DNA from: Piromyces finnis finn
Taxonomy: Eukaryota > Fungi > Neocallimastigomycota
Assembly (NCBI GenBank): GCA_002104945.1
Contig: MCFH01000018.1
Coordinates: forward strand, 186,001-250,000
Direction of reading: 5' to 3'
DNA: 64,000 bases
The translations under genes were made by a program, and so were the position numbers. Below are positions 56,477 through 59,400 of the stretch, one piece after another; positions within the stretch are counted from its first letter, which is position 1; each line of letters opens with the position of its first letter. Under the pieces are notes generated by a model. It worked only from the letters and a program-made list of their open reading frames with translations, searched no databases and was not told where the DNA came from.

Positions 56477-59400
56477 ATGTCAAATGTTGACTTTTTAGGT
56501 GTAAGTATTTAAATTGTATTTACTATTCATATAATACATAATTTTTGGAAAGGAAAGTTTTCAATTTATTTTGTTTCAATTAGTATTTTTATTTATTAAT
56601 AAATAAATATTTATTAAAATATCATCAAAATGCTAATGTGATAACTTCTTAAATCAAATGAAGTTGTTTATAAATAGCTTTTTTTTTTTTTATATATATA
56701 TTCATATGTGATAAAAAAAAACTTAACAAAATATGGAAGAAAAATATAAATATATTTTTTTTAATTAAAAAGTAAGATAAAGAACAAAATAAAAAGAATA
56801 AATAATTAATATATAAACACATTAAATAAAGAATATAAGTAGATAAAAGGAAAATGTAAAATTTTATTAAATGATCATTTAAACAAAGAATATGTTTATT
56901 AAAAAAAAAAAAAAAAAAAAAAAAAAAAAGAAATAATAGCTATTTATTAAATATTTTTTTGAATGTTAATTGTTAAATTTTATTTTAACAGTTATATTAT
57001 TCAGTAGTTTAATACAACATCATTTCAATTATGCTATAATTAATAATATTTTTGTTAATATTATTTTCTTAATAATTATTAAAATCAATTAGAAAGCTAT
57101 TGAAATTGTCAAACAAGCTACCGAAAAAGATAATAATAAGGAATATGAAGCAGCTTATAAATTATATTCTAATGCCTTAGAATATTTCTTAACGGCAATG
57201 AAATGTTAATATAATATTTATTTATTCATATAAATAAAATAAAAAATAAAAATTTAATAGTTTTGTTTATTATATAAAAAAAACGAATTACTAATTTAAA
57301 TTAATATATCATGAATTCTTTATATATATTTTTATTTGACAATTAATCTTACTATCTAATTTATAAATGTATAATATATTAATTAATTAATTAATTAATT
57401 AATTAATTAATAATAATAACAATAATATCCATTCAAAAAATTTTAAATGATATAAAGATGAAAAAAACGAAAGATTAAAGGAACCAATTAGAAGAAAGTT
57501 TACTGAATATTTAGATAGAGCTGAACAATTAAAGGAATATCTTCAAAAGCAAAATAAGAAAAAGGCGGTTCCAGTAGGTAAAATACAGAAAAAGAAATCA
57601 TTATCAGATAGTTCAAATAATAAAAAAAAAGCAACCAATAATAATTCAAATAGTAAGATTAATAGAGTAAAAACTATTAAAACAACCAGAAATTCATTAA
57701 AAAAGGAAGAGAAAGCAACAAAATCCAAAATGACTGATGAAAAAAAAGAATCAAGATCTAATAATAAAGTAACAAAACTAAAGAATAAAACATTAAAACC
57801 AACAAAACTAAAGATAAGTGATAAATCCAAAAAATATTCAACAAAAACAAGTTCAAATACAAAATTGATGAAAAATAATCAAAAATCAACAAAATCATCT
57901 ATATCAACTAAAACAGAGATAAATGAAAGTAATATTGTAAATATAACTGATACATCGAAATTGAAAAGAAAAACTATAAAAAAAACACAAACATCATTAC
58001 TGAGAAATATAATGACAATGCCTCCAATAATAAGGGAAACAATTATTCAACCAATACGAACAATAATATTACCCACAATAATAAAAAAATCAAATACACC
58101 ATCAATACAAAAGATTAATAATTTAAGAAGTAAATTATCAAATACTATTCAATTTTGATAACAATAAATAATATTTAATAAATATAATAAAAATTAGTTA
58201 ATATATAATGATATAAATTCTATAAAGGATTAATTTATAAAATTTCCATTTCATTATTTATTGTTGGTTTAAAAAATGAAGATTAATTATTATTAAAAAA
58301 TAGATTATAAAATCGTTAGAACATGCAAATTGACTTAAAATTTTCAGAGAAAAAAAAAATACCAGCAAAATTTAAAATTATTATTTAATTTCATTCTTTT
58401 TTTTTTTTTTTTTTTTTTTTTTTTTTAATTATAACAATGTTTTTATATAAATATTAATTAGGTAATAATATTTTAAAAATCACTAATGTATTTAAATATT
58501 GAAATATTTATATGCATTTAGGTGGCGGTGGTAAAAAGAAAGATGACGATGACGATGATGATAAAGATGATTCAGAAAAGAAAAAATTACGAGCTGGATT
58601 AGAAGGTAAGAAATTATATAATAATAATAATAATAATAATAATTTAAAAATTCAGTAGTAATGATATTGATAAATATTATATGCATATTTAAATTATTTA
58701 ATTCAGGTGCTATTCTTACTGAAAAGCCAAACGTTCGTTGGGATGATATTGCTGGTTTAGATGGTGCTAAAGAATCCTTAAAGGAAGCAGTAATTTTACC
58801 AATTAAATTCCCAAGTTTATTTACTGGAAAGAGAACTCCATGGAAGGGCATTTTGCTATATGGTGTAAGTAGAGCAAAAGTTAAATAATTTTTTATTAAA
58901 ATTAAAGAAAAGTATATAAGATATATATTGAAATATAATTTTTAATTGTAATGTTTAATTAAATTTTGTTTACATAGCCACCAGGTACAGGTAAATCATA
59001 TTTAGCGAAAGCTGTTGCTACAGAAGCAAATTCAACCTTCTTTTCTGTAAGTTCTTCAGATTTGGTTAGTAAATGGATGGGTGAAAGTGAACGGTTTGTT
59101 ATCATAAAATATTTTTGTTAATTTTATAATATATAATATATTGTATAATATATAAAATAATTATATTTATAATAATTATGATATATTTAAATTTAAATTT
59201 ACACAGTTTAGTAAGGAATTTATTTGAAATGGCTAGAGAAAATAAACCAGCTATTATTTTCATTGATGAAATTGATTCTTTATGTGGTACTCGTGGTGAA
59301 GGTGAAAGTGAAGCCAGTAGAAGAATTAAAACCGAATTCTTGGTTCAAATGCAAGGTGTAGGTAATGACCAACAAGGTATTTTAGTATTAGCTGCTACTA

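Follow-up and report, generated by a model that had tools for sequence, protein, structure and literature searches.

The public model of the VPS4 gene of Piromyces finnis places a 944-nt intron directly behind the exon that completes the MIT domain, and the reading frame of that exon runs on far into the intron. The locus thus raises the question of whether the segment is an intron throughout or whether part of it encodes protein. The window analysed here is a 64,000-nt stretch of P. finnis genomic DNA, to which all positions refer, and the gene lies on its forward (+) strand. Nine exons in the window give exactly the 434-aa protein of the public annotated model ORX51402.1 (P0124): exon 1 (56477–56500; MSNVDFLG, followed by a GTAAGT donor), exon 2 (57093–57204; MIT helices 1-2), exon 3 (57458–57577; MIT helix 3, ending ...KKKAVPV-G, supported also by its reading frame and by PF04212), exon 4 (58522–58605; behind the acceptor discussed below, with the acidic canonical linker) and exons 5–9 (58707–58864, 58978–59093, 59207–59569, 59645–59724 and 59828–60075; the AAA ATPase and Vps4_C). 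The annotated intron begins with a donor GT at 57578–57579 (CAGTAG|GTAAAA, hereafter D1) and its acceptor AG ends at 58521. The protein has the Vps4/SKD1 order of domains, MIT (PF04212), then the AAA cassette (PF00004), then Vps4_C (PF09336). Exon 3 matches the MIT profile over positions 42–66 (E = 1.9e-4), a partial match because the MIT domain is split over exons; PF04212 is present on the full proteins of VPS4 orthologs (precomputed matches), and the cluster mates of the P. finnis protein carry PF00004, PF17862 and PF09336.

The initial annotation had described a stop-free run of 193 codons behind the MIT exon, and reading the frame confirmed it. Open from 57460, this frame continues through 193 intronic codons (57577–58155) up to a TGA at 58156–58158, which closes it unless the frame is left at a downstream donor at 58130 (D2). 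That such a run is unlikely by chance also held: none of 20,000 dinucleotide-preserving shuffles stayed open, the longest open run in any of them being 152 codons, and the other two frames of the same DNA hold 24 and 27 stops. Open runs of at least 150 codons number only 12 in all six frames of the window. One could nevertheless see in the open frame a functionless by-product, either an A-rich low-complexity stretch or an exon relic that is yet without stops, and the composition of the open tail (K 22%, S 14%, T 14%, I 11% and N 11%) is indeed what A-rich DNA encodes. Against this stands a strong codon periodicity, the codon-position base bias giving a chi-square of 66.7 (p = 2e-12) in the extension and p = 0.71 in the rest of the intron. 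The GC content is 0.21–0.24 in the extension versus about 0.12–0.15 in the rest of the intron. Elsewhere in the window, an Asn-rich 160-codon open run with a GC content of 0.069 (23525–24004, +) is the only long open frame without exon-like GC content.

What is found in relatives bears on this explanation too. These were reached from a chytrid-like Vps4 (P0001), which led to a cluster of anaerobic-fungal Vps4 proteins, and genomic loci were compared from Anaeromyces robustus, three Neocallimastix assemblies (two paralogs each), Piromyces sp. E2 and two gut-metagenome species, one represented by loci L022–L027 and the other by L029. An in-frame extension of 173–242 codons lies at the identical place in five lineages besides P. 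finnis, so that VPS4 orthologs in other anaerobic fungi do keep the frame open here, as the initial annotation had proposed to check. Counted after ...KKKAVPV, there are 193 open codons in P. finnis, 173 in both Piromyces sp. E2 and the L022 species, 195 in A. robustus, and 242 in both Neocallimastix paralog A and the L029 species; Neocallimastix paralog B has 4. In all six extension-bearing lineages, the D2 donor is kept in phase 1 and in the context AGAA|GTAAAT(T/A), and the open run ends 1–15 codons past it.

The way in which these sequences have diverged speaks further against a by-product. In a codon-blind DNA alignment of P. finnis with Piromyces sp. E2, all ten gaps within the extension are multiples of three (10/10), and so are 1/6 to 2/6 of those in the intron remainder, the lower figure referring to the whole remainder and the higher one to an alignment without 58161–58196; with the L022 species, the extension shows 5/5. 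A substitution-only neutral simulation at the P. finnis–E2 divergence yields a mean of 8.2 stops and a probability of remaining open of 1.5e-4, for this one pair alone. On the other side of the balance, dN/dS of the extension is 0.57–0.95, that is, near 1, and for one species pair, E2 and L022, DNA identity is no higher in the extension (0.72) than in the neighbouring intron (0.76). From these two observations, the insert residues seem to evolve almost freely, and constraint on them looks weak. Still, a frame open in six lineages from at least three genera, with frame-preserving indels, and with a paralog B intron that has the look of decay, is not what a by-product would leave behind, and we consider this explanation very improbable. 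What selection keeps, judging from the alignments, is the frame, its openness, the charge, an N-terminal block (GGKxQKKK ... SNSKI) and a C-terminal block that contains PxIIR/QPIR repeats and has ...IN..R-S at its end, and not the rest of the sequence. In P. finnis, the SNSKI motif (TCR AAT AGT AAR ATW) lies at 57643–57657 and the C-terminal block (KRKTI..., PPIIR / QPIR repeats, ...IN..R) at 57967–58129. The middle of the insert varies in length among lineages, and in the L022 species it contains a 39-nt (13-codon) tandem repeat (L022 4590–4788; 5.1 copies, 93% matches, without indels); by this evidence, insert length changes by in-frame repeat expansion.

Neocallimastix offers an internal comparison, as it has two VPS4 paralogs of 434 and 435 aa (paralog A, L005–L007; paralog B, L013–L015). 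The open extension of 242 codons is found in paralog A only. At the same position, paralog B has an ordinary 631-nt intron with a GC content of 0.15 and 16–27 stops per frame, in which no remnant of the extension was found. The two paralogs may thus reflect a division of labour after duplication. The two genes sit on different genomic contigs; a 3500-nt JGI contig (Ga0307464_100926; L008 / L016) carries both, spliced, tail to tail and on opposite strands, and is probably a chimeric assembly. Outside the anaerobic gut fungi, the introns of Spizellomyces VPS4 amount to about 530 nt in total, too little to hold such a stretch, and Batrachochytrium VPS4 shows no sign of a large open intron. As to the neighbourhood of the gene, VPS4 is followed in the metagenome loci L022–L029, about 2.2–3.3 kb downstream and in the same order, by an ORF of 100 aa and by a large gene that encodes two kinase domains; the 100-aa ORF is also present in Piromyces sp. 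E2, and there seems to be synteny with the kinase gene at the end of the window (about 61971–64000).

If the extension is coding, how is it joined to the remainder of the protein? D1 (57578) and D2 (58130) are both phase-1 GT donors, lie 552 nt (184 codons) apart and have a common acceptor, so that either choice keeps the frame, as in an alternative 5′ splice-site event. The D2 hexamer (GTAAAT, 58130–58135, in the context AGAA|GTAAATTATC) recurs at the donor of exon 7 in this gene. The segment between the two donors (57578–58129; 552 nt, 184 codons, in frame with both flanking exons) would thus be an alternative coding extension of exon 3, supported by frame, conservation and periodicity, and the segment behind D2 (58130–58521; 392 nt, GC about 0.12–0.15, without codon periodicity) the true intron, removed in both isoforms. 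Within the latter, about 40 uninterrupted T (approximately 58396–58437), some 85 nt upstream of the acceptor, may form an extreme polypyrimidine tract. Note that the extension is not an exitron, a class that was considered and rejected: what the short form loses is a stretch of 944 nt, which is not a multiple of 3 and includes the TGA at 58156 and a non-coding tail.

D2 is one of three phase-1 GTs that the initial annotation had named as sources of isoforms with variable linker length, and that we place at 57653, 57929 and 58130. The proposal stands for 58130, which is kept in six lineages and used in a relative (see below); the GT at 57929 lies within a P. finnis-specific insertion. The GT at 57653 (A|GTAAGA) is conserved within the invariant SNSKI motif: the codons TCR AAT A|GT AAR ATW occur in all seven sequences, which therefore share another same-phase GT, a candidate third donor. 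The same motif bears on the possibility that the intron harbours a gene of its own, starting for instance at the ATG at 57730, where the list of open reading frames gives a 142-aa ORF (57730–58158). Conservation, however, sets in directly behind the exon, with GGKxQKKK and SNSKI both ahead of this ATG, and the Met at 57730 is itself not conserved. With no homolog found among 1.84 billion protein representatives and a single copy in the genome, a nested gene is scarcely credible.

Evidence that D2 is used comes from a spliced record. P0129 (DNA record L002) is an Anaeromyces-like Vps4 of 566 aa, whose 130 additional residues lie precisely between ...AVPVGG and GGNKKK. All other introns are absent from L002; aligned to the A. 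robustus genome (L003), the record continues past the MIT exon for about 580 nt and then passes to the usual next exon. The junction in L002, ...GCAAGAA|GTGGCGGT..., is D2 joined to the normal exon 4. We take L002 to be RNA-derived because eight introns are gone, and a processed record because it extends exactly from ATG to stop. It is the one insert-bearing spliced record, and comes from a species about 5% diverged from A. robustus. Together, the conserved D2 and the spliced record joining it to the normal acceptor divide the 944-nt “intron” into a 552-nt coding extension and a 392-nt true intron, and the claim that an alternative donor gives a long-linker Vps4 is borne out for this relative. 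The reading we favour, and consider probable, is therefore that the MIT exon has an alternative extension that is conserved (57578–58129), that a real intron follows it (58130–58521), and that a long-linker Vps4 isoform is produced through D2. For P. finnis itself, we infer both the use of D2 and the translation of the long form.

Might the long form then be the main or even the only product, and the annotated short model an artefact? The exact 434-aa P. finnis protein is on record from genome annotation only, on one contig, which would leave room for this. However, canonical spliced transcripts with UTRs are available from A. robustus (L004, which leaves at D1) and for both Neocallimastix paralogs (spliced JGI contigs), and L030, the sole product of a third metagenome scan, is canonical as well; a second such scan gave no confirmed locus. 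The two Neocallimastix proteins have 35 and 34 canonical contigs, spliced JGI contigs being among them. Among spliced records, the short form is thus represented by A. robustus L004 and the long form by L002 from its ~5% diverged relative. We regard it as highly improbable that the short model is an artefact. As canonical transcripts dominate the public records, the long form would be minor at best. In four sequencing runs guessed to be RNA (X1–X4), 0.46–0.53 of the sampled words were found, where 0.36 would be expected from the canonical exons by themselves and 0.54 if the extension is included; this fits inclusion of the extension but is a weak hint, indistinguishable from retention of other introns.

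The open frame could alternatively serve an MIT-only isoform, made by intron retention or by transcripts ending in the intron: a protein of about 270 aa that lacks the ATPase, consists of the MIT domain and a basic tail, ends at the stop at 58156, and would compete for or tether ESCRT-III tails. In every lineage, the frame of the MIT exon meets its first stop 1–15 codons past D2. The first stop past D2 falls at the same codon in three Piromyces-like species (window 58130–58158; L021 3776–3804; L022 4981–5009), yet it is TGA, TAG and TAA, a weak hint that its position is kept. Conversely, no such protein was found in the 128–406 aa range by word search or among the 1.84 billion representatives, and the sole insert-bearing record is spliced at D2. 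The stop lies upstream of six further introns, and a premature stop upstream of introns is the usual mark of a target of nonsense-mediated decay. Moreover, genera whose insert proteins are just 36% identical share the ten bases GTAAATTATC, which is more in keeping with a splice site than with a C-terminal tail. An MIT-only product is therefore unlikely as the explanation of the open frame, although it may coexist with the long-linker form.

A related suggestion concerned the end of the open frame, where the residues LRSKL had been loosely likened to a MIM1 helix. MIM1 is an amphipathic helix of the form (D/E)xxLxxRLxxL(K/R). LRSKL lacks the acidic start and the Leu spacing, no helix is predicted, and the likeness fails because R-S-K simply translates the donor, AGA A|GT AAA. 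Splicing of the long isoform removes whatever follows the Ser of R-S-K, and its K is the last codon before the stop in A. robustus and L029. A complex prediction of the MIT domain (P0124 1–82) with the 55 conserved residues at the C-terminal end of the insert scored 0.05 and speaks neither for nor against an interaction.

We then come to what the insert itself would be. Its net charge in P. finnis is +38 (counted over 185 residues) with a pI of 10.8, and +26 to +54 with a pI of 10.6–12 across all lineages. AlphaFold2, run on the seven-sequence alignment, gave a mean pLDDT of 52.6 and no secondary structure, and the insert is thus predicted by modelling to be a disordered linker. Database searches covered 57458–58160 and 58197 onward. 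The tail matched no Pfam family and gave no phmmer match among the 1.84 billion protein representatives; the region search with the P0129 insert gave no match either, and Rfam nothing on both parts of the region. A word search with exon 3 plus the tail returned only canonical Vps4, via the MIT part, and cluster representatives in large protein collections include none with the insert. Within the genome of P. finnis (232 contigs, 56.5 Mb), no second copy was found, so that the stretch is single-copy. Note that these blank searches say little, because the insert-bearing P0129 sits in a canonical Vps4 cluster without being its representative, so that such forms can escape searches of representatives. 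Two long Vps4-like matches, P0065 and P0052, are unrelated tandem or duplicated forms.

Under the long-linker reading, two 5′ splice sites, 57578 and 58130, would compete for the acceptor at 58521. The first would give the annotated 434-aa Vps4 with its acidic linker of 29 residues, and the second (A|GTAAAT) a 618-aa Vps4 with 184 extra residues between the MIT domain and this acidic linker. The insert could alter the placement or the switching-on of Vps4 along two routes. It could tether Vps4 to acidic surfaces, as in the layout of spastin, or offer a long flexible chain to the enzyme's own pore and thereby autoinhibit it. How long the MIT-ATPase linker is, and what it consists of, matters for autoinhibition and for the reach of Vps4 to ESCRT-III filaments (PMC12254338). 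For yeast, Wienkers et al. 2025 (PMC12254338) argue that selection has kept the normal Gly/Pro-rich linker from binding the pore, and that Vps4 no longer binds a substrate peptide once flexible residues that do bind the pore are fused to it. As a tentative proposal, which we hold to be possible rather than likely, anaerobic gut fungi could possess a switchable second Vps4 that predates the split of the genera, and whose insert either re-targets the enzyme to acidic surfaces (microtubules, membranes, nucleic acids) or plugs the pore as a pseudo-substrate. A further short isoform from the SNSKI GT and the MIT-only product may add to the set. If this were true, splice-site choice would be a regulator of ESCRT-III disassembly and the gene a natural experiment on Vps4 linker length.

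On the strength of the comparative evidence, we regard the extension as a real, conserved and unannotated coding feature. What would be new is an unannotated form of Vps4 with a basic spacer, the Vps4 protein itself being known. Such an isoform would be one of the rare instances in which an early-diverging fungus conserves alternative splicing that alters a protein. In a literature search, no paper describing alternatively spliced Vps4 linkers, or this isoform in Neocallimastigomycota, was found. The public gene models found for P. finnis, Piromyces sp. E2, A. robustus and Neocallimastix all skip the stretch; therefore, hidden coding extensions in the “long introns” of these very AT-rich genomes may be under-annotated.

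It remains to set the locus beside known systems. As an alternative 5′ splice-site event, it is typical in having two same-phase donors, one acceptor and a 552-nt stop-free difference divisible by three, and atypical in its size, unusual for a fungus, and in its conservation across genera. Spastin is an AAA ATPase of the meiotic clade with an MIT domain, a basic disordered region and an AAA domain, and its inter-domain region is varied by alternative splicing. The predicted long isoform has the same order of parts, MIT, basic disordered region and AAA; unlike in spastin, the insert comes without sequence similarity and the ATPase is a true Vps4 with a Vps4_C domain. With the microtubule-binding linkers of the spastin/katanin type, the insert shares only its charge and its position. 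To our knowledge, the ESCRT machinery has no ATPase other than Vps4. The short P. finnis isoform is an ordinary member of the Vps4 family, with the MIT domain, flexible linker, AAA ATPase and Vps4_C of canonical Vps4/SKD1 (yeast Vps4p, human VPS4A/B), and its ATPase is, as judged by eye, some 80% identical to that of the chytrid-like P0001. The linkers of known Vps4 proteins have about 30–45 residues and are rich in Gly, Pro and acidic residues; that of yeast counts 29 (PMC12254338). In contrast to canonical Vps4, the predicted second isoform of P. finnis would add 184 basic residues (130–240 in relatives), and a natural isoform of this kind, conserved in several genera and with an oppositely charged linker about seven times as long, would provide a ready-made test of ideas on the Vps4 linker.
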